64,000 nt of DNA, from the NCBI GenBank assembly GCA_001179505.1, contig CDMY01000394.1, positions 1-64,000 on the forward strand. The letters run 5' to 3'. A program made the position numbers and the translations under genes. The notes under the pieces are model-generated. The model saw only the letters and a program-made list of their open reading frames with translations. It did no database searches and was not told the origin of the DNA. Within the stretch, counting starts at the first letter, position 1. Each line of letters starts with the position of its first letter. This DNA is from Vitrella brassicaformis CCMP3155. Its lineage: Eukaryota > Protista > Chromerida. Positions 1,934 through 64,000 of this stretch are shown piece after piece.

Positions 1934-3384
1934 GCCTGCCCGGCGCCGGCAAAGGCGCCAGCTGGAGCAAAGAGCCTCATGCCCAGATTCTGCAGGTGGG
2001 CGGGGCAGGCACAGAAGGCAGACACACATACACACACACGCATTCATCGATCGCCTGTGTGTAAGTGTATCAGGTTCTTTCCTGACGTGGGTGGGCCTGC
2101 GAGTCGGAAGTACGTCCTCGTGGGCGCACACGGCGTCAGGGGACCCACCACACTCACCATCTGGTGGGCAGCACATCCATCCACAGACACATGCATGTGG
2201 ATGTGTGTGTGTGTGTGTGTGCATATGACTGACAGGAGGGTGTCGGGGAGCCGGGTTGAGATGGTTGGCGGGCAGTACCTGGCCGACAAGGTGCCCTGCT
2301 GCAGCATCAACATCAGGTACCTACGTCACCCACACAGTCACACACACTCTCACTCAGCAAAACGATGTGGTTTGTTCGTGTTTGTCTGTGTGTGTATCCC
2401 TCGCCCACTCACTCAGTGCTGACGGCAGGTCCGTCGCTCTAGGCCTGACTGACGGTGGCGTGAGGCTCATCAACACACCTTTCCCGACGTACGCAGAGCA
2501 CACAGCAAGGGGGGGAACGACCATATTTCTTTGTCATTTATGNNNNNNNNNNNNNNNNNNNNNNNNNNNNNNNNNNNNNNNNNNNNNNNNNNNNNNNNNN
2601 NNNNNNNNNNNNNNNNNNNNNNNNNNNNNNNNNNNNNNNNNNNNNNNNNNNNNNNNNNNNNNNNNNNNNNNNNNNNNNNNNNNNNNNNNNNNNNNNNNNN
2701 NNNNNNNNNNNNNNNNNNNNNNNNNNNNNNNNNNNNNNNNNNNNNNNNNNNNNNNNNNNNNNNNNNNNNNNNNNNNNNNNNNNNNNNNNNNNNNNNNNNN
2801 NNNNNNNNNNNNNNNNNNNNNNNNNNNNNNNNNNNNNNNNNNGTGTGTGTGCGTGTGTATTGGCTCTCTCTCTCTCTCTCTGTGTGTGTGTGGGTTTAGT
2901 GGAAGTGGTTGGAGTCTGCAGTACAGCTACATGCCCCACGGCCTTCCCACAAAGGCCGTCTGCTTCGCACAGTAAGGGGATGCTATGCGCGCCTGTTGGT
3001 CGACTGGCCTGTGTGTGTGTGTGTGTGTGTAGACGTGGGCTGCTGGTCTCTGCTGGCGCCGATTACTCCCTCATGGTAGTCAAGCAACATGCGCAAATGT
3101 GCGGGCGAGAGAGTAACGACATGCGTGTGTGTGTGTGTGTCTGTGTGTCGCTGTGCCAGCACCAGGTTGCCGACTCGACTAGAAAACGTCCGTGTGCAGG
3201 TCGCGGCTGCCGTACGTGTGTGTTCTGGATGCTTCTATTGATGATCGTGGCTGTCGTGGTGGCTCAGGTGGTCAACGTGGGGCTGCTGCCCGACAGTGAC
3301 AGCCATGTGTCTGACACTAGCAGAGCAGCAGAAAGTTCTGTCCACACAGCTGCCCCAGATCAGACCGTGCGGGACGAACTCTGA
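1934..3384 (+). CDS. Sec12/PREB-like WD40 membrane protein, copy 2 (apparently 5'-truncated tandem paralog; spans an N gap)
   Basis: Same exons as copy 1, plus upstream exons ACPAPAKAPAGAKSLMPRFC|RFFPDVGGPASRKYVLVGAHG. It ends ...PDQTVRDEL*. I see no exons for an N-terminal half between 1210 and 1930. Confidence 0.55.
2543..2842. other. Assembly gap (300 N)
   Basis: Run of exactly 300 N. Confidence 1.
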
Positions 3385-4086
3385 GTGTGGATGGGGGGAG
3401 GAAGGCTTGCAAAGGCAGAGAGGGGAGTGAGGTGGGTGTGGGTGTGGTGGCTGGGGGGAAATAAACACGGGTGTGAGTGAAATATGGAGAAAAGACATGC
3501 AGTGTCTGTCAGCCATGCCGCACTCACCCACACATTTGTACAAGTGATCCGACCACCGTCAAGCCAGCTGTACACACACACACACTCGCTCCCTCGCTCC
3601 CTCCCTCTCCACCTCACTTATGCATCATCCATCTGAACCTTTCTACGGGTCGTCGCGTGGCCTTCGCCACTGTTGTTGAACCCCTTGCTCAGTAGCAAGC
3701 ATGGCAAACCAGACAATCAACAATGGCACCGACCCCGCAACGACACGTCTGCCTGTCTGTCGATGAAGGATCGATCACAGAGAGCCGCATCCGCACTCCA
3801 TCCACACCACACACACACTCGACCACCACCACAAGCATCCATCCATCCATCCACTGCCCTCTGTCTGCATCGTGTGGTTGTCGACTTGGCGCCACACACG
3901 TGCCGGTAAGATAGCTTTCGTCCCATCTCACCAGGGCGTCTGTCTCGCCAGTCTAAAGCCCAGCGATGCAGAAGCGGAAGAGGGCAGAGAGAGAGAGAGA
4001 GAGAGAGGGAGAGACAGGAAGGTACGCAGGGGTTGCCTTGGTCGATTGCTTCAGCCCTCCACCCCCTCGCCATACATGAATTCCTC

Positions 4087-8503: not shown

Positions 8504-9560
8504 AGGGGAGGGTGGGTCTGGGGGATTGGGTGATTTTGTGATGATGATGCGGTGCGTGTGAGGAAGCTGGGGTACATCTCATGCTGCCTTCATGTGAGAG
8601 CGATCGAGTGCGTGTGTGAGGTGGCGCTTTGAATGAAGGGATGGATGGATGACGAACCAGGCTCACCCCTCACTGGCTGCCTGCCTGCCTCCCTCCCTCC
8701 CTGAATGCCTGCCGGCATGCAGACGGCCTGCGTGTGTTATCTATCCATCTTTTTTCAGCCCTCCTCTCTCCCTCTCTAATGTCTGTGTCGATCTCTGATG
8801 TCTGTGTTGCTCTGCCTCCCTCCGTGTATTCGAGAGCGGTCGACGGTATGATTCATTGCTCCTCTGCATATGGTATGTCTGTAGCCATACGGGCGTTTGT
8901 TAGCCAGCCATACAGCCATGGAGCATGCAGCGTGCCGTGCCGCGCCACACACCGGCCCCCTCTATATCCATGTCTCACTGACCACTTCCCTCTCTATCTC
9001 TGTGGATTTTCTGTCTGTCTGTCTGTGTCTGTGTGTGTATGTAACTCTACGGAACGAAGCGAACGAGGCGACCGATTGAGAGGTTTTAAGCGCACCCGTA
9101 CACGTGTTGACGCACGTGGGGCGGGTGCTCCTCTTATTGCCTACCTGCCTGGCTGGATGGATGACGGATCCATCCCTCCCCTCTCCCTCTCCCTCTCTCT
9201 CTCTGAAGGACTCATAGGCAGAGACAGACCACGTCTCTAGACAGAACTTCTGCGTCTCTATAATTGCGTAGCGGATCGAACGGAAAAACGAGCAGGCAGA
9301 CAGACACAGGAAGGAAAACTTGTGCGCGGTTTCCACAGCACGGCACGGACGCAGAGGCCTCACTCAACGTCACATCACACATCACATCACATCACATCAG
9401 CACCCTCCCTACCCATATCAACAACGCAGCCTCCCACACCCAACTCCCCCACCAACCATCCGATCCACCCCGCCGAAATATCACCCGGGCCGCCGCGCGT
9501 AGATAGATAATTCGACAGCAACTTCGCACGTGCCCCGTCACTCCACTCGCTGCCATCACA

Positions 9561-11125
9561 TCACTGGCCCCCCGTCCACCGGCCCTTGCTGGCCTTCCTG
9601 TCGAGGTATGCCCTGGTGTGTCGGTTCTCGTGCGTCACGCGCCACCTCTCCATCCACGGCCCGCCATTCGTCGTGTCGAACTCGCTGTCGTCACCATCCC
9701 CACCGGCCACCTCAGTCTCGCCCTTGCCGCCTCCCTGTGTGGTGTGTCGGTCGGTCTCGGTGCTGGACCAGTCAATGGACAGTCCCGGCCGGCTCGCGTC
9801 GCGCATCATGACGGGCGGCACCAGACCTGCATGGCATGAAGGACACACACACATGTGTTCGTTCGTTGATAGGGTGTGAGGGTGGGGGAGGGGGTGGTGT
9901 GTGTGTGTGTGTGTATGTACCCCAGAAGCCGGTGGGTTGAGTGGGGTTGAACCAGCGAAGGTCGAGGCTCCATCGGATGCCGTCCGATCGGTTCTGCAGA
10001 CTGCGGTGAGGGATGAGATTGTTGAAGAGCAGCACGCCGCCCACACCGAACTCACAGGTCACCACATCTCGTGAGAGATCCACACCTGCCCACCAGAGAG
10101 AGAGCCTCAGTGTGCTGTGGTGGGTGTGTTGGCTGCTCTCGCTCTGTCTGTCTGTCTGTCCATGTGGCTACCGAGAGTGCGCTGCATTTCGTCTTCAGGG
10201 AGGTCGACGTACCAGGTGTTGCCCGCGCAGCAGACGTGCTCAGCCACCTTCTCCCTCCTGTGACCGCCACGCACCATCTGACCACACACATACACACACA
10301 TTGCCCAGCACACACGCGGCTGTCTGCTGCTGCCGTGGGCTGGCTACCCTACCTGCAGGCAACCGTTGGTCAGGTTGGCGTCAACGAGGGGCACCCATGC
10401 AGTGACGGTGAGGGTGCGGTCCGCCTCTGGTGAAAGATAAGCAGCATCTTGGTGCCACGGCACCGTCAGTTGCTGCACACACACCACGAACGACACCACG
10501 AGAGGTGCGTCACGTCACTCCCGTGACGCATTGACGCACCTCGTTTTGGGGAATCTTTGAGCGGAGGTTCCACACGGGATGGCCGGCGATGTTGGGGCCG
10601 ATCAGCTGCTCCACGACATTCAACAGACGCTCGTCGCACCTGACACACAACACAACACCCAGATAGATGGGCTGGTTGGCCCTTCCTGCACTGGCTGTCC
10701 CCAACCATATGGCCTTGAAGGCGTCGGGGCATCTGGTGGCCTTGTGGATGAGCACCGCCGCTCCGGGGAATGCCTTGTCGAGGTGTATGAGTCGGTCGCG
10801 GAAGCCGTACCCCTCGCACCTGTCCGATATCTTGCCTGCACAAATAACACACAGCACACGCACCTTACACACCACACCCGGCTGGGCTGTCCCTCCCTCT
10901 CTCTCTTGCTGCTGTACGGACCGTACCAGCTTTGTAGAGTTTGTCTGCGAGTGTGTCGACCATGGCGTCCATGGCGCCCCTGCAGGCCTCCAGCTTCTCA
11001 TGGGTGATGTAGTCAGGGAGGATGACGAAGCCGTCTGTGAAGAACTGTTCGAGCTGCTGCTGAGTGAGCTGCCCGTCCTTCTTGTGCGCCACGGGCGGCG
11101 GGATGGTCGTGAACAGATTCTCCAT
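9561..11125 (-). CDS. Phytanoyl-CoA dioxygenase (PhyH) family Fe(II)/2-oxoglutarate oxygenase
   Basis: LTQQQLEQFFTDGFVILP; NLRSKIP; TVPWHQDAAYL (HxD); TAWVPLVDANLTNGCLQV; GGVLLFNNLIPHRSLQNRSDGIRWSLDLRW (distal His and 2OG-binding Arg). Confidence 0.9.
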
Positions 11126-11166
11126 CTTTCAACCCGAAGTCTCTCTCCTTCCAGCGGTTTCAGAGA

Positions 11167-11192
11167 GCAGCGGTTTCAGGGAGCACCCTAGG
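11167..11192 (+). promoter_or_regulatory. Conserved divergent-promoter element, copy A: GCAGCGGTTTCAGGGAGCACCCTAGG
   Basis: The 21-bp core at 11172-11192 is identical to 43569-43589 and matches the reverse complement at 63783-63803 at 19/21. It lies in the 103-bp gap between two divergent ATGs. A regulatory function is inferred. Confidence 0.6.
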
Positions 11193-11228
11193 AAGCAATC
11201 AGCCACTTTGTAGGTATTCATTTCGGCG

Positions 11229-11610
11229 ATGGAGAAGGTGTATGACTCGTTCGGCAACCAGGGACTGCAGGACTTCAAGAAGCCGCCGGCCGAGGCGCCC
11301 ACACGCCGCGCTCACTCACTCTCGGACATGTTCCACGCAATTCATCTGCCGCCGCTGCCGTCATTCCTGACCCATCTCGGCCATGATGTGCATTCCAAGA
11401 AGCAGGCCGTCTTCGTCAAGCCGCTGAGTGAAGCTGAGGCCAAGAAGCAACGGGAGGAGGACACAAAGATGCCGAACAAGATATTCAGGCAGGCACACGC
11501 ATCAGTGTGGTCCATACCTGAATGTGTGTGTGTGTGCTTTCAGTGATGTCGGCAACGTGCCGCTTCAATCCTTCAAGAAGGCTGCATCCTTCGGCGGCGA
11601 ACGAACATAG
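11229..11610 (+). CDS. Small hypothetical protein (~108 aa) with a repeated GNxxLQxFKK motif; GC-AG intron 11489-11543
   Basis: ATG at 11229. Removing gcaggc...gtgctttcag joins KIFS-DVGNVPLQSFKKAASFGGERT*, which echoes the N-terminal YDSFGNQGLQDFKKP. Confidence 0.7.
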
Positions 11611-12442
11611 CCCTACTGGCAAGTACGGAGCACCAAACCGCCCTTCATGGCATGGCAAGCCCACCACACGACACGACACCCGATCTCTTGTTTGGCCTGT
11701 CTGCTGCACGCCTCAGACAGAAACGCTGCCTTGATGTGATGGACCGTCAGGTGGTTCGCGTGATTTGTGTTTCATTCACCGTGCTGAGTTTGCCTGAACG
11801 TCGCCTGTCTGCCTGCCTGTCTGTCTGTCTGTCTGCGGACTGTGTTAAGTTGTCTCGGATGCCTGAGTGGGTGGGCTGGCGTAAGGTGTGGGCAGCAGCG
11901 AGGGGCGTGTTTGGGATGAGAGGTATGGTTTTTTCGTTTCGGGCTTGTGTAGAGTGAGTGAGGCGTTGATTGAGGGATTCCACTATGCATCGCACTAGCT
12001 AGCTGCGTCATGTATCGTTTCTGTGCTGTATTTTTCCTTGTGTGTGCGCTTGACTGTCTGCCGTTTTTTTTCTAACTGACTGAATGCTGACTGTTGATTG
12101 CAATGCATCCACATGTTGTATATAGCAAGCCCATTGATGAGTGGCTCTGCCTTCCTGTCACGCGACTGACCTGGCTGGCGTCACATGTTCGTGCAGATCC
12201 ACGGGCGTGGCTGCCGGCCAGCTGAGCTGCGGTGCAGGGGACAGGGGGCGAGTTTGTCGTCACTATGCAGACAGACACGGGCCGCACTTGATGGATGGAT
12301 GAACGAATGCCTGACTCATAGCTAACACCACGAAATGAGCTCATGTGCACACACATCAACAGCCATCAGGTAAGGTAAGTCAGTGCACCACTAGCGGCAT
12401 GCACACACAACGTTCGTGGAAAAGGTACGCATTGCATCCACG

Positions 12443-15400
12443 TCACGTCGCAGAGCAGCAGACGATCCTCTGACACGAGACAGCCGGACTCTCCTCCAGT
12501 AACACTCTCGGCCGGCCCATACCGACTGTCTGCACGACTCCTTCCTCACACACAGGCAGGCTCGGCCGAGGTGAGGCGAAGCCGACGGCATTCAGCCGGG
12601 CGATGTTCGGTCTCGGCGAGGCTAGTGGCGGGAATGGCGAGGGTAGAGGGGCGTGTGGACAGAATGGGTGGACGGGGAGGGGCCTCGTCTGAATGCGCGG
12701 CGTCGGCGGGAGAGACACCAGCCGCACGGGCGGCGGACGGGGGCTGGCGTGACTCACGACGCACACGCGGGCAGAGCGAGATGTCTGAAGCCGCAAGGTG
12801 AGACGAGACATATCACATACATCACCAACATGTACACATACATACGTGAATTGGCATCGCTGACCTGATAGCCCTCGTCGGTGTCACGTCTGCACACCGC
12901 AAGGTTCGGGCGGGCAGGATGTGAGCCATCCATCGGTGGGACGGGGAAGGGAGAGAACGGGTCCTGTGGGCACAAGTCACACACAATGCACTTGCAGACA
13001 CCATTGATGCACACGCACGAGTCCCATTGACATACCTGTAGCCTCCCGTTGACAATGCGTCTCATGCCGCGCGTCGGCGAATCAAACAAAGGCCGCTGGA
13101 ACCATGGCTTTGATGTGGGGCATACCGGCCCATTAGGGGATGCAGGGGGTGGACTCCAGGTTATCGCTTCGGCAGCCTGGGGTTGGTACACCAGGGCAGC
13201 GTGTCGTTCGGCAGGCGACGAGGGATCTGCATCTTCTTGGCCCATTCCCTGTCGCCGCTTTCGCCCCTTGGCTGCCCAGTGAGGGACGCCCGGCTCGGAT
13301 GGCGGCGAGGCCTTGGGAAGAGCACCCGGTGCGCTCACCTTTGCGCCACTCACGGACCGTCTTCGCCGTCTGGGGTCGCTCCCAAGCGACTCAGTGCGGG
13401 TGTTCCTCCTCTTTGGTGCATTGCACCCTCGCGACACCAGCCTGGGCGGTGGGGCCTTGATGGCAACAGCAACAGCGGCTGTTGCGGCAGCGGATTGGTG
13501 TCGTGTGGCTGGGTCCGGCATTTGGGGGTCTGCTGGTGCGAGCATCCGCTGTGCCTGAAGGCTGAGGGCATCCACCAAAGGCCCATTGCTCGATATGCCA
13601 TCTGATTGATAAAACAAGACGAAGGCAGCAAGGCTGGTCGTCGGATTCAAACAGTGTGGCATGCGCGGCTTAGTTGTGGTCCGCACCTGTCCCGCCGGGC
13701 CGCGCTGCTCTTTTCGGTGGAGGTGGCGTGTGCAGAATGGGAGACTGTTAGAGGGACAGAGAGGGGGAGACATGAGGGTGTTCATGTCCCTCTCTCATTT
13801 CCCTCCCACCTCAGGTTGGGCATATGCCTTCTCCAGCTCGGCTCTCATCTGTCACGCACACACATACACCAAGTGAATGAGTGGAAGCATAGCATCTGTG
13901 TGATTCTACGAATAGGGCACACCCACTTGGTTGTTCTCGGCTTCCAGTTTGTCCACCATCAGCCTCAGGTCGACCTCAGTCTTTCTTGCGTGAGCTATTT
14001 CTTCCACCTTGCCCTGGCCAGCAGCGCCTCCAGGTCGATCTGGCGAGACGTCGGCAGCGGGTCGGACGGAGAAGCGGCGTCACTCTCCCTCTGTTCCTCA
14101 GTGGCCGCTGCTATGCCACCGGATGGCGCACTCTCGCGATTACCGTATGTGTCAGTGTTGCTGCGCCTGAAGAGGCGAGCAGCACAGTGCGTGGTGATCT
14201 GCTTGTGGTGTTTTGTGTTACTGGTAGTGTTGTCTCCGTTTGCTGTCTTGCGAGCCGTGGCGGTCAGATGGGGGGTCTGAGTCATCGTCGCTCTCATCGA
14301 CACTGCTGAGGGACCGCTGGCCCCCGCCAAATGGTCCCTCAGCACCGGTGGTGTGTGAGCGGACCACACGACGCCTGGCGGCGTTGTGGAGCTCCGACTG
14401 GAAGAGCTCGTCTGCGAGTGAGACTCGCTTGGTGAGGTTGGCGGCCTGGATGCGGGACCTGTGGCCCAGCTCTTCATCCAACTCTTGCACCTATGTATGC
14501 ATGGACACATCCACAGATACACAGACACTCATCTGAGACACGAAACTTCAATGAGCCAAGATCTGGCTTCCTTACCCTCTGTCTCATGTTATCCAGGTCT
14601 TGCTGGAGGTAGCCGATGCGCGCCAAGTGGTCCCTCTGCTCGCCCTCCAGTCGGTCCTTCTCCACCCTCTCTGTGTCCAGCTGCCTCTCCAACTCATGAA
14701 TCCGGTCCAGCAACTCATGACGCTCCCTAACAGCAACCGCACACAACACAGGTCATTCAGTCGACGAGAGGTGCCAGACTGACAGCGCAGACAGACAGCA
14801 GGCACCACATACTTACTTTTCCAATGATTTGCATGTGCGTCTGAGGGCCTCCTGGCTTCTCTTGTGCGATTCCATCACTGCCGTCAGTTCCTGCTGGGCG
14901 TCTGTATCCTGCAAAGACTCCGATGACCCCTGTGGGCTGTGCTGGCGGTCGCCAAGAAGTTCCAGACTCTGACGCATGGCGTCCATCTGACGCAAGGAGA
15001 GGAAAGGCAGGGCGTGCCTCATTCCTCAGATGAACGAATGGATCGGTTCCATTCGTCCATGCATTTCACCTCTCTGCGATGTTCGAGTGTCTGCGCCTCC
15101 AGCAACTGGCGGCCCTCCTCAACCTCAGCCTCCAATGCTGTCTCCCTCTCGCGCAGACTCTCAATCCTCCTCCCCTGGTGGGCATTCGTCTCCCGCAGCG
15201 CCTCCACCTCCCTCTCAGCTGCCGCCAGTGAGCTCATGATCTCATCGCTCCACTCCATGTGCCGTCTCTCCACGTCAGCATCAGCAGCCGTCCTTCGCCT
15301 CGCCCGTCTCTCCAGCTCACGCACACGCCCCTCCCTCTCCTCCAGCTCCTGCATGCGGCAGCTGACCGCCGATGCCTTGGCCTTGGCGCGCCAGTACTTG

Positions 15401-22690: not shown

Positions 22691-22916
22691 TGTGGATGAT
22701 TGAAAGAGGTCGTTTGTGGATGGCGATCGGCTTGCTGCGTGCCCTGGTGCCTATCCATATAGCGAAACGGCGCTAGATCTTCCCTCTTCCATCAGCTAAG
22801 CTCGCACAAAGCTCGCAGAGAGGGATGAGCGAGGCGGCCAATCTGCGCGTCGAGTACGGCACTGAAGAGGCAGATCTGTTCGTTTGATTGATCCTCCCGC
22901 TGAGATCTCATTCATC

Positions 22917-23473
22917 ATGAGCAAGCGTGAGGGTCAGAAGACCATCTTTGAGTTCAACCGCTACCTCAACAAGAGGGTCAGAGTCAAATTCAACGGAGGC
23001 AGAGAAGGTGAGTGCGTCAGCACCAACACCCACTCACTGACGGCACCAGCTTGAGGGAAAACTGTGCGTGTGTGTGTCGGATGCTTGTGATGCATGTCCC
23101 GTCAGTGACGGGCATCCTGAAGGGCCATGACCAGGTGTGCAACCTCGTCCTCGATGACACAGAGGAGTACCGCAGAGGTGCACCGCACTCGCACAACAGT
23201 CTGGTACTCGGTGGATCTGTCTGTTGGTCATCTTGTCAACTGGCCTGTGTTTCCCTGGAGCAGATCCCGATGATCCGTTCAAGCTGCTCAACGAAACACG
23301 CCAGCTCGGCCTGGTGGTCGCCAGAGGCACTGCGGTAAGCACATAGACACACAGCGACCGCACTGATTCTGCGTTGCGTGGATGCGTGTGTGTGAGTTCA
23401 GGTGATGTTGGTGTCGCCAGTTGAGGGGATGGAGGAGATATCCAACCCCTTCGTCAATGTGGCCGAGTCATGA
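22917..23473 (+). CDS. LSM7: U6 snRNA-associated Sm-like protein LSm7
   Basis: Four exons give MSKREGQKTIFEFNRYLNKRVRVKFNGGREVTGILKGHDQVCNLVLDDTEEYRRDPDDPFKLLNETRQLGLVVARGTAVMLVSPVEGMEEISNPFVNVAES*. Confidence 0.96.
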
Positions 23474-42100: not shown

Positions 42101-43453
42101 GCCCTGTCGGACGTCCTTGGCCGCTTTCTCCCTCTCATCTTTGCCAGGCACCTTGATGACGCCCAACCTCATTTTCGCATTGGGGTAGCCCGCTACCGCC
42201 ATCCATCCATCCATGCAGAGAGTGTCTGGTCTGTGTGGGTGCGTTCATCAAGGAGGTGTGATTGGTGCGGTGTGTGTGGTGTGTACCGAAGGCGAAGTGG
42301 TGGCTCTCCTTTGGAACGCCCTCGGCCGCCGGGTTGCTCTTGACGACGTGCTGGTGCACTATGTCGTATGCTGCATGCCATCCATCCATCCAGCCAGCCA
42401 TCTCATGAAAGATACACACACATTGTGTATGTATGCGGTGGGGGGTGGGTGTATGTGAGTAATGTGGTGCTTGTCTTGTGCCATCCCATGCCATGCCATG
42501 ACCCACCGGGGATGTGCGACTCGTCGAATGAGCAGAAGGCGATGTAGGATGAATCAGGCGACCACCAGTAGCCTTCAGACACACACACACACACACACAC
42601 ACACATCCATCCATCCACCGATCCATCCATCCATCGTAGCCGTCCGTCCTCCCTCACCCCCACCTCGCAATCGATGCATCTCCTCCTGTGCCATATATTC
42701 TGCCAGCCCGGTAGTCCATCCGCCATTGCCTCTCGCCCCACTGGTCAGCTGCAGCGCCACGCCAGGCTCCCCCTCGCCCTCCACCCCCACCACATACACC
42801 TCCTTGTCCCTCACCAACGACACCATCTGCCCGTCCGGCGACCACAGGGCATCCAGCATCGGGTGGGGGTCGTCAGGCGGCGCGTCCAGGAGGCAGTACG
42901 GCTCGGTGGGTTCTTCGTCTGTGCTGGACGACGGGAGTGACTTGATCCAGAGTGCCTTGCCGAAGGGGAGGAGGATGCTGTTGTGCGCCGTGCTCCAGTG
43001 GTACTTGGTCACACCCAGGCCCGACGAACGCGCCCGCTCACGCTGCAGCTTCTCCTCCAACCTGCACATGACGTCACACACGCACCCACACGTGTGCAGT
43101 GAGTGCACCGGAACGCATTGATTCGTTCGATTCATGTGTGTCTGTCTGTCTGTCTGTCTGGCTGCAGCTCACGAGAGATCTTCGTCTCTGAGTGCCGTGT
43201 TGGTCAGCCTGAGAGGGTCCACAATCCGCCTGGGCACGCCCTCGTCCACATGGATGGCATACAGGTGCCGCACACTGGCGCCATGCACAGCCAGGTAGGT
43301 CACCCACTTGTTGTCTGGGGAGAAGGAGAACGTGTTGATGTAGCTGCCGTTGGCTGGGCGGGTCATAAAGGTCTGCCATAGGAGCGGCTGGCTGGCCGGG
43401 TGAGAATGGCTGCCAGGAACTTCGGGATTCAGCGGCACCGAGGGAGCTGACAT
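39194..43453 (-). CDS. Dipeptidyl peptidase IV family (S9B), DPP8/9-like
   Basis: Propeller motifs EGYWWSPDSSYIAF and YPNAKMRLGV; hydrolase motifs KIDNRGS, MGRIELEDQIDGV, GIFGASYG|GY (Ser), IHGLLDENVHFRHS (Asp) and FPTQRHCIR (His). The final exon ends ...ATSDVTSG* at 39194. Confidence 0.93.
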
Positions 43454-43563
43454 GGCTCAAGCGACAAGATCTGCACAGCTACTCGCAGACTTTGATACTC
43501 AATGGACGTGTGAGCGGTGTGGAGCACGTCAAACTCACAGACATCAGCTGCGCGCGACCTTGG

Positions 43564-43589
43564 GCAGTGGTTTCAGGGAGCACCCTAGG
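43564..43589 (+). promoter_or_regulatory. Conserved divergent-promoter element, copy B: GCAGTGGTTTCAGGGAGCACCCTAGG
   Basis: 25/26 identical to 11167-11192. It lies in the 189-bp gap between the DPP ATG (43453, -) and the ATG at 43643 (+). Confidence 0.6.
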
Positions 43590-43642
43590 CCACAGGCGAG
43601 CTAGGGGCAACTCCCGATTCGTTTTTTTTGTCGGCAAACAGG

Positions 43643-44469
43643 ATGGCGTTGGCAGTGCGCAGCAGCCGTGCCTTTCTGCAGGGCAGGCTGACGGTCGCCC
43701 CTCTGTCGCAGCGGATCTCCGCCCGATGGTTCGGTGCGTATGACGGTCAGCCTGTGACGGACGCGCAGCTGGTCAAGAAGGACCCCGACTGGGTGATAGA
43801 GGAGACCAACTTCTGCATCGGTCGCATCGGCTTCGTGCGCCACAAGGAGACCGACGACATGGCCCGCCGCACGCTGCGCATCTTCGACACGCAGCTGCCG
43901 CGGATGCAGACCCGGCTGCGGGACGGCACCGTCATCCCCGCCATGGGCTTCTACATGGACCACATCGTCGACCGCCCCGCGCCGCTCCACAACTTCGTGG
44001 AGAAGCCAGTCCTCAAGTACACGTGGGACGAGACGTACGACGAGGCGTGGGAGGATGTGGAGGGGCCGGTGGGGGGCACCAAGGACCCCACTGAGTGGCC
44101 CAAGGCCAAGCCGCCCAAGCGCACCTACCCGCCCGAGATGAACAGGGCCTCCAAGCCACCCCCACCCGGGCAGGGACGGATGGCCTCAGCCAGCAAACCC
44201 ACGGTAGGTCAAGGTCAGGAGTGAAAGGGGTGGCTACACAACACAATACAACACGACACAAGACTAGACGCTATCTGTGCAGCACAGCACAGCGTGTGGT
44301 CAGCGATGGATGGATTTGGCACATGTCATGTGTGCAGGCGCACGACGTGGGTGAGAGCAAGAGGACGGGCATCAAGTCCACCGCGGAGCAAACCAGGGAG
44401 GCCATCAAGAAAGCTGCTGCTGAGGCCAGGGAGGCTGTGGCTGAGGCAATGCCGTCCTCGAAGAAGTGA
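43643..44469 (+). CDS. Hypothetical protein with mitochondrial-type presequence
   Basis: The N-terminus MALAVRSSRAFLQGRLTVAPLSQRISARWF is Arg/Ser-rich and lacks acidic residues. One in-phase intron (KPT|AHDVG); ends MPSSKK*. Confidence 0.75.
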
Positions 44470-61700: not shown

Positions 61701-63710
61701 TCATCCACTTTTCTTCTCATAGATGACGAAATGTGAATCCAGCACCACCTCCCCACGCACCCCCTCTGTCCAGAAGCTGTCGAAATGCCTTATGGTCTCT
61801 GTGTAGCCATGCGTTCGCAGCCACTCCCCCACACGCCCCTGAGCAAAGCTGCCCCTCAGCAGCACATCCCACACCACAAAATGGGTAATCGGCAGCTGAG
61901 GCACTGCTGCTACTGTCCCGCTCGATGTGTGTGGAAACCGCCCAGCCAGACACTCAGCCCACTCTGACCTTCCCTCACACGTTGCTACGGCGCCGTGGTG
62001 CGCATCTGTTGTCATATTCATGGCGCCATTGACGATGTGCTCGAGGGTCTCAATGGGGTGGGTGTAGAAGGTATCTCTCCAGTTGGCAGGGAGGCACTGT
62101 GGGTCGACGCGCGACGAGCAGTCGAGTAGGTGCATGGCGATGTCGGGCCGATGGACGAATGAGTTGAAGGGTGTGGCGTGGCAGGGCGTGAGGAACAACA
62201 CCGACGGCCGGGGGGAGGGCGGCAGAGAGCGGATGTATCCCATGACCTTCTCGGCGCCCTGCATAACATGACAGCACACGAATAAATAAAACAAACAGCA
62301 CATGAGATAGATAAGCCGTGTTTGTTATTGTGTCTGTCCGTTTGATTAGTTAGTCACCTGTTGGTGGACGAACGAGAAGAAGGCCGCGGCAATGATCTGG
62401 ACCGCAAAGATCACTGAGAGAGCCACACGCACCACCACCTTTCGCCACGATCGCCCTCGCATGACGGTCTGCGCCACATGGGAAGTGTTCTTGTTTTCTT
62501 TGCCGTTGGCCTGAGAGCCCCTCTGCCGCTGCCTGATGGATGTTGCATCGCCCCCACCAGCGACGGCCCTTGTGCCAGCGACGGCCCTTGTGGCAATATC
62601 AGTATCTCCCGACGCCGCCACAGTAGCATCAGCACGTGACCCTGGCTCCTCTGCCCATTCCTCCAGCCGCACCATGCTGATTGCTGACCACATGTAGAGG
62701 TACGGCAGGTAAGGCATCAGGAAGCGAAACTCCTTGTGAGATGCTGTCGACAATGCGCCGATGCTCAGCAATACACCCAACACGATGTCCCTCGAGAAGG
62801 ACGATGCTCCTTCGGCAGTAACGGCAAGCCAGGCGCCCACGATGCAGAGCGGATAGTAGGTCAGCAGCACCGCCCCTAGCCCATCAGCGAGATACCAGTA
62901 GGGTGGATGCGTGCCATAGAATCGGCCTCCATCCAGCTGCACATTGAAGCGCCAGAAGTTGAGCATTGGGAAGGTCAGTCGCCCGTATAGCCTCGAGTCA
63001 ACATAGACCGACACACAGAGTCCACACACGCCCACCAGCAGCCCCTGGCCTATGAACACAGCGAGGTCAGCAAAAGACCGCCACTTATCCCTCTTGTCTG
63101 TAACCATTTGGCTCCCCAGTCGCAGGGCGTGCGCACCATAAATGACCACCCACATGACGGCTGCCGTCGGCCGAATCACCACAGCCACAGCCGCACACAA
63201 CAGACTCCCCAACAACGACACCTGTTTCCTCATGCCAGCGGTGGCATTGGCCGCCCTCAGCCACATGTGCATAGCAGCCGTCATCAGAAAGACCTCCAGA
63301 CAGTTTGAGAACGGCCGGGGGCCGCAGAAGAAATCAAACCACCCCAGAGCACAGCACCAGAAGCACCAATCGCCGACTCTCCGACCAAACAGCTGTTCAC
63401 AAATCCCCACAGTGAGGCAGTTGGTGACAGCGGCGAGGGCGCCCTGCATGAGTCTTGGTGAGTAAGCCACGATAAAGGGAGTGTCCAATTGCAGCAGCTT
63501 GAGTGCGGCGAAGAGCATGCTGATGAGCAGCGGGTGCAGATGGGATCTGAGTGCGATGCACGGCTCCCACTCCCATGTGGTGTAGCCGTAGCCGAATGTG
63601 AGGCGATGGGCGACCTCAGGGCCCTGCCAGTGCTCATCGGGGTTGAAGGACGTGCGCAGAACCAACGCATTCACCACCCGTAGCGCCAGAAAGAATGGCA
63701 AGGATTGCAT
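61701..63710 (-). CDS. PIGB: GPI mannosyltransferase 3 (PIG-B/Gpi10)
   Basis: FLALRVVNALVLRTSFNPDEHWQGPEVAH...YGYTTWEW...LRSHLHP; IRPTAA; NFWRFNV...FYGTHPPYWY; SHKEFRFLMP; LTPCHATPFNSFVH...LLDCS. Confidence 0.96.
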
Positions 63711-63782
63711 CAATCGGATCTACGCAAGATCAGCATCGCATCGCTACATCCCATCGCATGCGATGCTTGAGCCGTGCAGGCC

Positions 63783-63803
63783 GCTAGGGTGCTGCCTGAA
63801 ACC
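63783..63803 (-). promoter_or_regulatory. Conserved divergent-promoter element, copy C (reverse): GGTTTCAGGCAGCACCCTAGC
   Basis: The + strand gctagggtgctgcctgaaacc reverse-complements to a 19/21 match of the copy A/B core. It lies in the 163-bp gap between the PIGB ATG (63710, -) and the ATG at 63874 (+). Confidence 0.55.
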
Positions 63804-63873
63804 GATCGCTTCTGCGCCGAGAGAGAAGGGAGTGGATCGTTGGGGGGTACTGCTGCCATAATTGATCTGCCCA

Positions 63874-64000
63874 ATGGCATCTGAGTTTGCCCAGATCCGC
63901 GCCTCCGAACAGTACAGGCTGCTGCTGCAGTGGATAGCCTTCTCATTGAATGAGCCCGTGGAGTCACCCAACTTCCAGCAGACCGTCAAATTCGCATACC
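63874..64000 (+). CDS. 5' end of a hypothetical protein running off the window
   Basis: ATG followed by an open frame MASEFAQIRASEQYRLLLQWIAFSLNEPVESPNFQQTVKFAY to the window end, divergent from PIGB. Confidence 0.55.
   Translation, partial: MASEFAQIRASEQYRLLLQWIAFSLNEPVESPNFQQTVKFAY

Follow-up and report, generated by a model that had tools for sequence, protein, structure and literature searches.

The ZNF143/Staf site (SBS) of vertebrate promoters is a word of ~18 to 21 bp, oriented and near the transcription start site (TSS), that is confined to a minority of promoters, many of which are bidirectional, and has a multi-finger protein as its reader. The oomycete INR+FPR core promoter is another long word (~19 nt) that sits at the TSS, is degenerate and is common to many genes. 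The plant telo-box, AAACCCTAA, is a short promoter-proximal word to which telomere-repeat-binding Myb factors bind, and relict spliced leaders occur upstream of retroposed dinoflagellate genes. We know of no trans-splicing in chromerids and of no established specificity for any Vitrella AP2 protein. Chromerids have many ApiAP2 proteins (PMC4501334), and some AP2 domains can read CTAG words, such as CTAGAA (PF13_0267) and GCTAGC (PF11_0442) (PMC2965767). The telomeres of Chromera velia are made of TTTAGGG (PMC3622300). In Vitrella, the median intergenic distance is 92 bp and there is an excess of head-to-head gene pairs (PMC4501334), so that very compact shared promoters are to be expected. Given this compactness, and since the related Toxoplasma makes little use of canonical core elements (PMC7854901), lineage-specific words at start sites seem plausible. 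Our literature search found no paper describing the 21-mer reported here or any Vitrella promoter motif, and the genome paper has no treatment of promoters.

The window, i.e., the whole 64-kb stretch of Vitrella brassicaformis DNA that was analysed (GC content, 57.7%), holds three copies of a 21-nt core. The earlier note on this DNA, made from the sequence, had reported two exact copies and one of 19/21 on the reverse strand, and we recovered them at the same positions and strands. The copies, and a partial one next to the first, are as follows.

11172-11192, plus strand: copy 1 of the core GGTTTCAGGGAGCACCCTAGG, exact match
43569-43589, plus strand: copy 2 of the core, exact match, in the 189-nt gap between a DPPIV-like gene and a 193-aa ORF
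63783-63803, minus strand: copy 3, GGTTTCAGGCAGCACCCTAGC, 19/21 (two mismatches), in the 163-nt gap between PIGB and the next gene
11154-11169, plus strand: half copy GCGGTTTCAGAGAGCA, truncated at its 3' end, which duplicates 11170-11185 in tandem over 16 nt with one mismatch

The element is real and not an artefact. None of 100 dinucleotide-preserving shuffles matched the 21-mer at up to 3 mismatches, which upholds the claim that its repetition goes beyond chance. When every position of the window was scored on both strands, the values were 21, 21, and 19, and all others were 14 or less of 21. The distribution is thus bimodal, and the element appears to be all-or-none, with no degenerate tail. 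The half copy before copy 1, without the CCCTAGG end, scores 14/21 (at 11156). Over 11167-11192, copies 1 and 2 have the same letter in 25 of 26 places, in agreement with the length of 21 to 26 bp first given, and they represent the sole exact complex dispersed repeat of at least 21 nt in the 64 kb, a count that leaves out CA-rich low-complexity runs and a segmental duplication at the window start. The latter (1-1176 and 2144-3585, ~1.2 kb), with long shared 21-mer runs on both sides of the 300 N at 2543-2842, represents a tandem duplication or else an artefact of the assembly.

Contigs from a DNA run allowed us to extend the unit. Copy 1 in its extended form, AGCAGCGG plus the core, from ~11166, is common to other genomic copies, and several DNA-run contigs start their match at 11166, giving a unit of ~27 nt. 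The consensus of this 21- to 27-bp unit is approximately RGCAGYGGTTTCAGGSAGCACCCTAGS. An alignment of the three copies with 150 nt on either side confined the identity to the core and ~6 upstream bases, within a loosely conserved RGCAGYGG. The longer shared flanks that would mark a transposon fragment, named in the earlier note as grounds for refutation, were therefore not found in this alignment. Neither target-site duplications nor terminal inverted repeats were seen by eye around the three copies. Single-strand folding, as a sign of a hairpin or cruciform, was no better than that of shuffles (z-scores of -0.1 to -1.4). The AGGG-CCCT dyad formerly proposed for the core gave no fold signal and is broken in copy 3, which reads AGGC. 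CTAG itself is strongly under-represented in the window (53 observed versus ~235 expected from base composition), and there are nine CCCTAG words, three of which are those of the element copies.

All three copies are located between divergent ATGs. The gaps, and the first coding exons on both sides of copy 1, are the following.

11126-11228: copy 1 gap, 103 nt from ATG to ATG
43454-43642: copy 2 gap, 189 nt from ATG to ATG
63711-63873: copy 3 gap, 163 nt from ATG to ATG
10926-11125, minus strand: first coding exon of the divergent minus gene at copy 1, spliced, with the spliced joints found in contigs
11229-11488, plus strand: first coding exon of the small plus gene at copy 1, from contigs, followed by a 55-nt GC-AG intron (11489-11543)

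The measured lengths of 103, 189, and 163 nt agree with the head-to-head gaps of 103 to 189 bp originally described. A rough codon-bias gene map gave an approximate count of ~9 head-to-head gaps in the window, with a total of ~3.45 kb (~5.4%), and 3 of these ~9 hold the element. On this approximate map, the probability of three random positions all falling in head-to-head gaps is ~1.6e-4. From the CCCTAGG end, the next ATG is 36, 53, and 72 nt away (copies 1, 2, and 3), and from the GGTTTC end, the other ATG is at 46, 115, and 70 nt. The observation that the CCCTAG end points to a nearby ATG is uninformative, because in head-to-head gaps there is an ATG 46 to 115 nt from the opposite end too. 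The 55-nt intron of the small plus gene fits GC..AG only, and its joint (11483/11539) slides by 5.

The genes at both sides of copy 2 are a DPPIV-like one (ATG at 43453, minus strand) and a 193-aa single-exon ORF (ATG at 43643, plus strand). Copy 3 is flanked by PIGB (ATG at 63710, minus strand) and the next gene (ATG at 63874, plus strand). Pfam confirmed the PIGB and DPP neighbours previously named, with Glyco_transf_22 (an Alg9-like mannosyltransferase whose relatives mark it as PIGB-like) and DPPIV_N, respectively, and gave no matches for the small flanking proteins. The PhyH label of the earlier note, for the spliced minus gene at copy 1, and its label of a mitochondrial protein are putative. 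ATP synthase 24-kDa was considered as the identity of a neighbour (Atlas 0.79) and rejected, being below the Atlas noise level. An exact look-up of the 193-aa ORF retrieved one contig of 1200 nt that spans copy 2. This contig is DNA, and silent on transcription, since its run holds unspliced contigs of 3.8 to 8 kb colinear with the genome. Exact look-ups of three possible edge-cut products gave no match, and PIGB exon 1, used in a word search, retrieved no Vitrella or Chromera entry. At copy 2, the TAG of the element itself (43586-43588) is in frame with the 193-aa gene and, as a stop, closes its reading frame 18 codons before the ATG. Directly 3' of this copy there is a further feature.

43595-43606, no strand assigned: GGCGAGCTAGGG, which holds GCGAGCT and a CTAGGG inverted with respect to the CCCTAG of the element

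Over 43583-43606, CCCTAGG, 11 nt, and CTAGGG hence form an inverted CCCTAG pair that flanks the GCGAGCT word. This word is a partial version, without the first base, of the 8-nt AGCTCGCA, which is found in the window at 1400 and also at 22799, 22810, and 37930, three positions that fall in other predicted head-to-head gaps. AGCTCGCA and TGCGAGCT are absent from the 21- to 27-mer, no AGCTCGCA occurs in the element-bearing gaps, and the copy 2 gap alone holds the partial GCGAGCT beside the element. The two sequences are unrelated, one being 8 nt long and common, whereas the other has 21 to 27 nt and is rare. Since they are found in separate gaps, the 21-mer seems to mark a different promoter subset. 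The copies at 22799-22817 are a pair of AGCTCGCA words offset by 11 nt (AGCTAAGCTCGCACAAAGCTCGCAG); the pair lies in another head-to-head gap, where the ATG at 22917 follows ~100 nt downstream.

For the copy 1 locus, we compared several contig runs over positions 9500-13500; all of them consist of assembled contigs. Runs X1, X2, and X8 are RNA-like, as indicated by their spliced joints and by the lack of depth over 12314-12581. The contig of the plus gene begins, with its own first letter, at 11193 in both X1 (record 4) and X2 (record 10), and the contig of the minus gene ends at 11154 in X1 (record 3, last letter), 11129 in X8, and 11105 in X2. Between them lies the following stretch.

11155-11192, no strand assigned: 38 nt between the divergent RNA-like contigs at copy 1, uncovered, equal to 1.5 element copies

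This suggests that at copy 1 the element lies between the RNAs of both genes, bearing in mind that contigs show presence, not absence, and cannot show where an RNA starts or ends. The contig start is an A at 11193 after a G, i.e., it is no pyrimidine-purine start, and a T/A step (in CTAG) is found 3 nt upstream, inside the element. Around this locus, the microsatellites (CTGT)n, (CA)n, and (TG)n at 10143-10163, 10283-10303, and 11519-11536 are common to dozens of contigs in every run, and they appear to split public assemblies into contigs of 1 to 13 kb.

Depth over the bin 11108-11241 differs strongly between the DNA run and two of the RNA-like runs. In the DNA run X3 it reaches 957 versus a flat baseline of 22, with 336 contigs matched. 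Using two routes, one dividing the excess depth by the single-copy depth and the match length (~26 nt) and the other subtracting the microsatellite-borne and resident contigs from the 336, we infer ~200 further near-identical genomic copies, within a plausible range of ~150 to 270. One X3 contig from elsewhere is identical over 11164-11193 (30/30), and a second one matches 11169-11198 with one mismatch (29/30). In X1 and X2 the bin has depths of 29.2 and 14.6, which is the contribution of the local contigs alone, so that no other contig of these 25- to 27-Mb assemblies carries the element. Short microsatellite matches were placed in X1 and X2 too, and thus short matches to the element would have shown. 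Random placement predicts dozens of copies in RNA contigs, if ~1/3 of the 72.7-Mb genome is represented. With ~200 copies in the DNA run and none in X1 or X2, the element seems to be a feature of the DNA that is excluded from mature poly(A) RNA. The exception is X8, whose summed depth over the bin is 548 though the local X8 contigs fall short of the element, indicating that ~10 to 25 other contigs of this run carry it, unlike those of X1 and X2. Outside this genome, GGTTTCAGGNAGCACCCTAG had no matches in JGI metagenome contigs or IMG/VR, which points to no outside relatives and no viral source.

We consider, with moderate confidence, that the element serves the compact bidirectional promoters of Vitrella brassicaformis as a binding site or core element that is long and rich in information. 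The suggestion of a transcription factor site or core element of divergent promoters had already been made in the earlier note, and it is strengthened by the short head-to-head gaps, by the lack of transposon flanks and by the way in which the element fills the gap between RNA contigs at copy 1. A promoter role is likely; its basis consists of three copies, the contig ends at a single locus and a copy number estimated indirectly. In mechanistic terms, the element is most likely a protein docking site, previously undescribed, that would help to start transcription, acting at the DNA level as a cis-element of RNA polymerase II promoters that are compact and bidirectional. A site of 21 to 27 bp calls for a reader with several DNA-binding modules, and the putative reader would be a sequence-specific protein of this kind, e.g., a multi-AP2 or multi-zinc-finger factor. 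Copy 1 would fill the untranscribed sliver between two divergent transcripts, and the mRNA on the CCCTAGG side may begin at, or a few bases from, the 3' edge of the element. The bound factor might fix the position of initiation, keep the tiny shared promoter open, or both. If the estimate of ~200 copies is right, the element would serve ~1% of the genes, as a promoter class separate from that of the AGCTCGCA word. Against this reading, near-invariance over more than 20 positions (21+) is unusual for transcription factor sites and would fit a recently spread repeat too. The X8 contigs that carry the element and the G/A step at the contig start also count against it.

Such a repeat is the main rival. 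According to it, the element would be a dispersed micro-repeat that plays no part in regulation by itself, a mobile or gene-conversion-spread remnant that favours open promoter DNA and whose copies are nearly identical because they are young. We regard this as possible, though rather unlikely. A co-opted repeat remnant had been put forward before as an alternative, and the all-or-none conservation (21, 21, 19, and then 14 or less of 21) does fit it, as do the 30/30 and 29/30 matches in other genomic contigs and the 16-nt local tandem duplication at copy 1. Besides, three copies in 64 kb, compared to the ~0.18 expected from ~200 in 72.7 Mb, hint at local spread. However, the copies share no flanks: homology does not go past ~27 nt, and there are no target-site duplications or terminal inverted repeats. 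A length of 21 to 27 nt is also below the size of any known mobile unit, and transposable-element DNA is very scarce in Vitrella (1.5 Mb) (PMC4501334). The exact fit in the 38-nt gap between RNA contigs speaks against it as well, because a neutral insertion in a shared promoter of 103 nt would be poorly tolerated. A fragment of a mobile element proper (MITE, SINE, or solo terminal repeat) is not supported, with no flank homology in the 150 nt aligned on either side, no target-site duplications by eye and no inverted-repeat fold signal.

Function and spread could also go together, in that the 27-nt unit might be a self-contained, portable bidirectional promoter module that moves between gene pairs by conversion or other copying, with a single factor setting both starts. 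We give this little probability. It would explain the near-identical copies, their local clustering and the tandem half copy, and under it starts less than 40 bp apart would be too tight for two independent pre-initiation complexes. Another improbable reading is a DNA signal of nucleosome-free gaps that is unrelated to promoters, either a chromatin boundary or insulator, with a CTCF-like logic, or a sequence-defined replication origin. A long invariant site with a few hundred copies, absent from the X1 and X2 RNA assemblies and spaced 20 to 32 kb apart in the window, would suit this role. Yet the RNA contig start that abuts copy 1 is more simply explained by a promoter, and approximately one copy per 360 kb genome-wide, as estimated, is sparse for origins.

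An element acting at the RNA level, i.e., a signal in the 5' UTR or a relict sequence resembling a spliced leader, seems very improbable. Read on the minus strand, copy 1 looks like one complete unit and then a second one cut off just after CCTAG, as in relict leaders, the half copy lacking precisely the CCTAG end on this strand, and some X8 contigs carry the element. Nevertheless, the contigs (not raw reads) of both neighbours stop at the element borders with no extra 5' letters, and the element is absent from the contigs of X1 and X2. Rfam 15 gave no match at the gathering score in the window, nor any at E<=1 over 11100-11260, and the papers retrieved on Vitrella and spliced leaders include, by title and abstract, none about trans-splicing in Vitrella. 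Chance recurrence, finally, has practically no probability left and is refuted by the shuffles (0 of 100 matched) and by the ~200 further copies in the DNA run.

Returning to the promoter element that we favour, a nearly invariant word of 21 to 27 bp with a few hundred copies would be a handle for the isolation of its binding protein by DNA affinity, and it is long enough for a regulon to be defined by a simple genome scan. It could also serve to test how the starts of two divergent transcripts can be less than 40 bp from each other where the median intergenic distance is 92 bp (PMC4501334).

Compared with the systems described in other organisms, the oomycete INR+FPR is similar in being a core element that is long, specific to its lineage and adjacent to the start site, again in the compact genome of a protist, but the Vitrella element is rare, nearly invariant and unrelated in sequence. 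Relict leaders of dinoflagellates are alike in the ~21-nt unit upstream of genes and in the truncated unit that adjoins copy 1, but the RNA contigs (the neighbours of copy 1, X1, X2) lack the element at their 5' ends. As for the telo-box, all three copies have an ACCCTA core and are promoter-proximal, at 36 to 115 nt from the flanking ATGs. However, the plant AAACCCTA(A) is absent, the element having CACCCTAGG instead, with ACCCTA alone in common; its TTTCAGGG half has an inserted C, and its conserved unit is three times longer. There is not a single TTTAGGG or CCCTAAA in the 64-kb window, and the resemblance to telomere and telo-box words once claimed for this element therefore comes down to the match of the ACCCTA core and is weak.

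ApiAP2 proteins are the obvious candidate readers, and the match in CTAG words is a lead towards them and nothing more. A long composite site could suit those of them that have domains in tandem, although known AP2 motifs have 6 to 10 nt versus the 21 to 27 nt of the element. If the reader turned out to be an ApiAP2 protein, it would provide a link between gene regulation in chromerids and in parasites. The ZNF143 SBS has no real sequence relation to the element (~11/18 by eye), and ZNF143 is an animal protein, but in logic this is the closest analogy, both sites being long, information-rich and oriented. Observations on the Vitrella element that bear on this logic are its length and invariance, the ~200 copies in DNA with none in X1 or X2, and, at copy 1, contig ends that suggest proximity to the TSS. 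As an analogy, and not as a sign of kinship, the ZNF143 SBS is the best functional counterpart of the Vitrella element.
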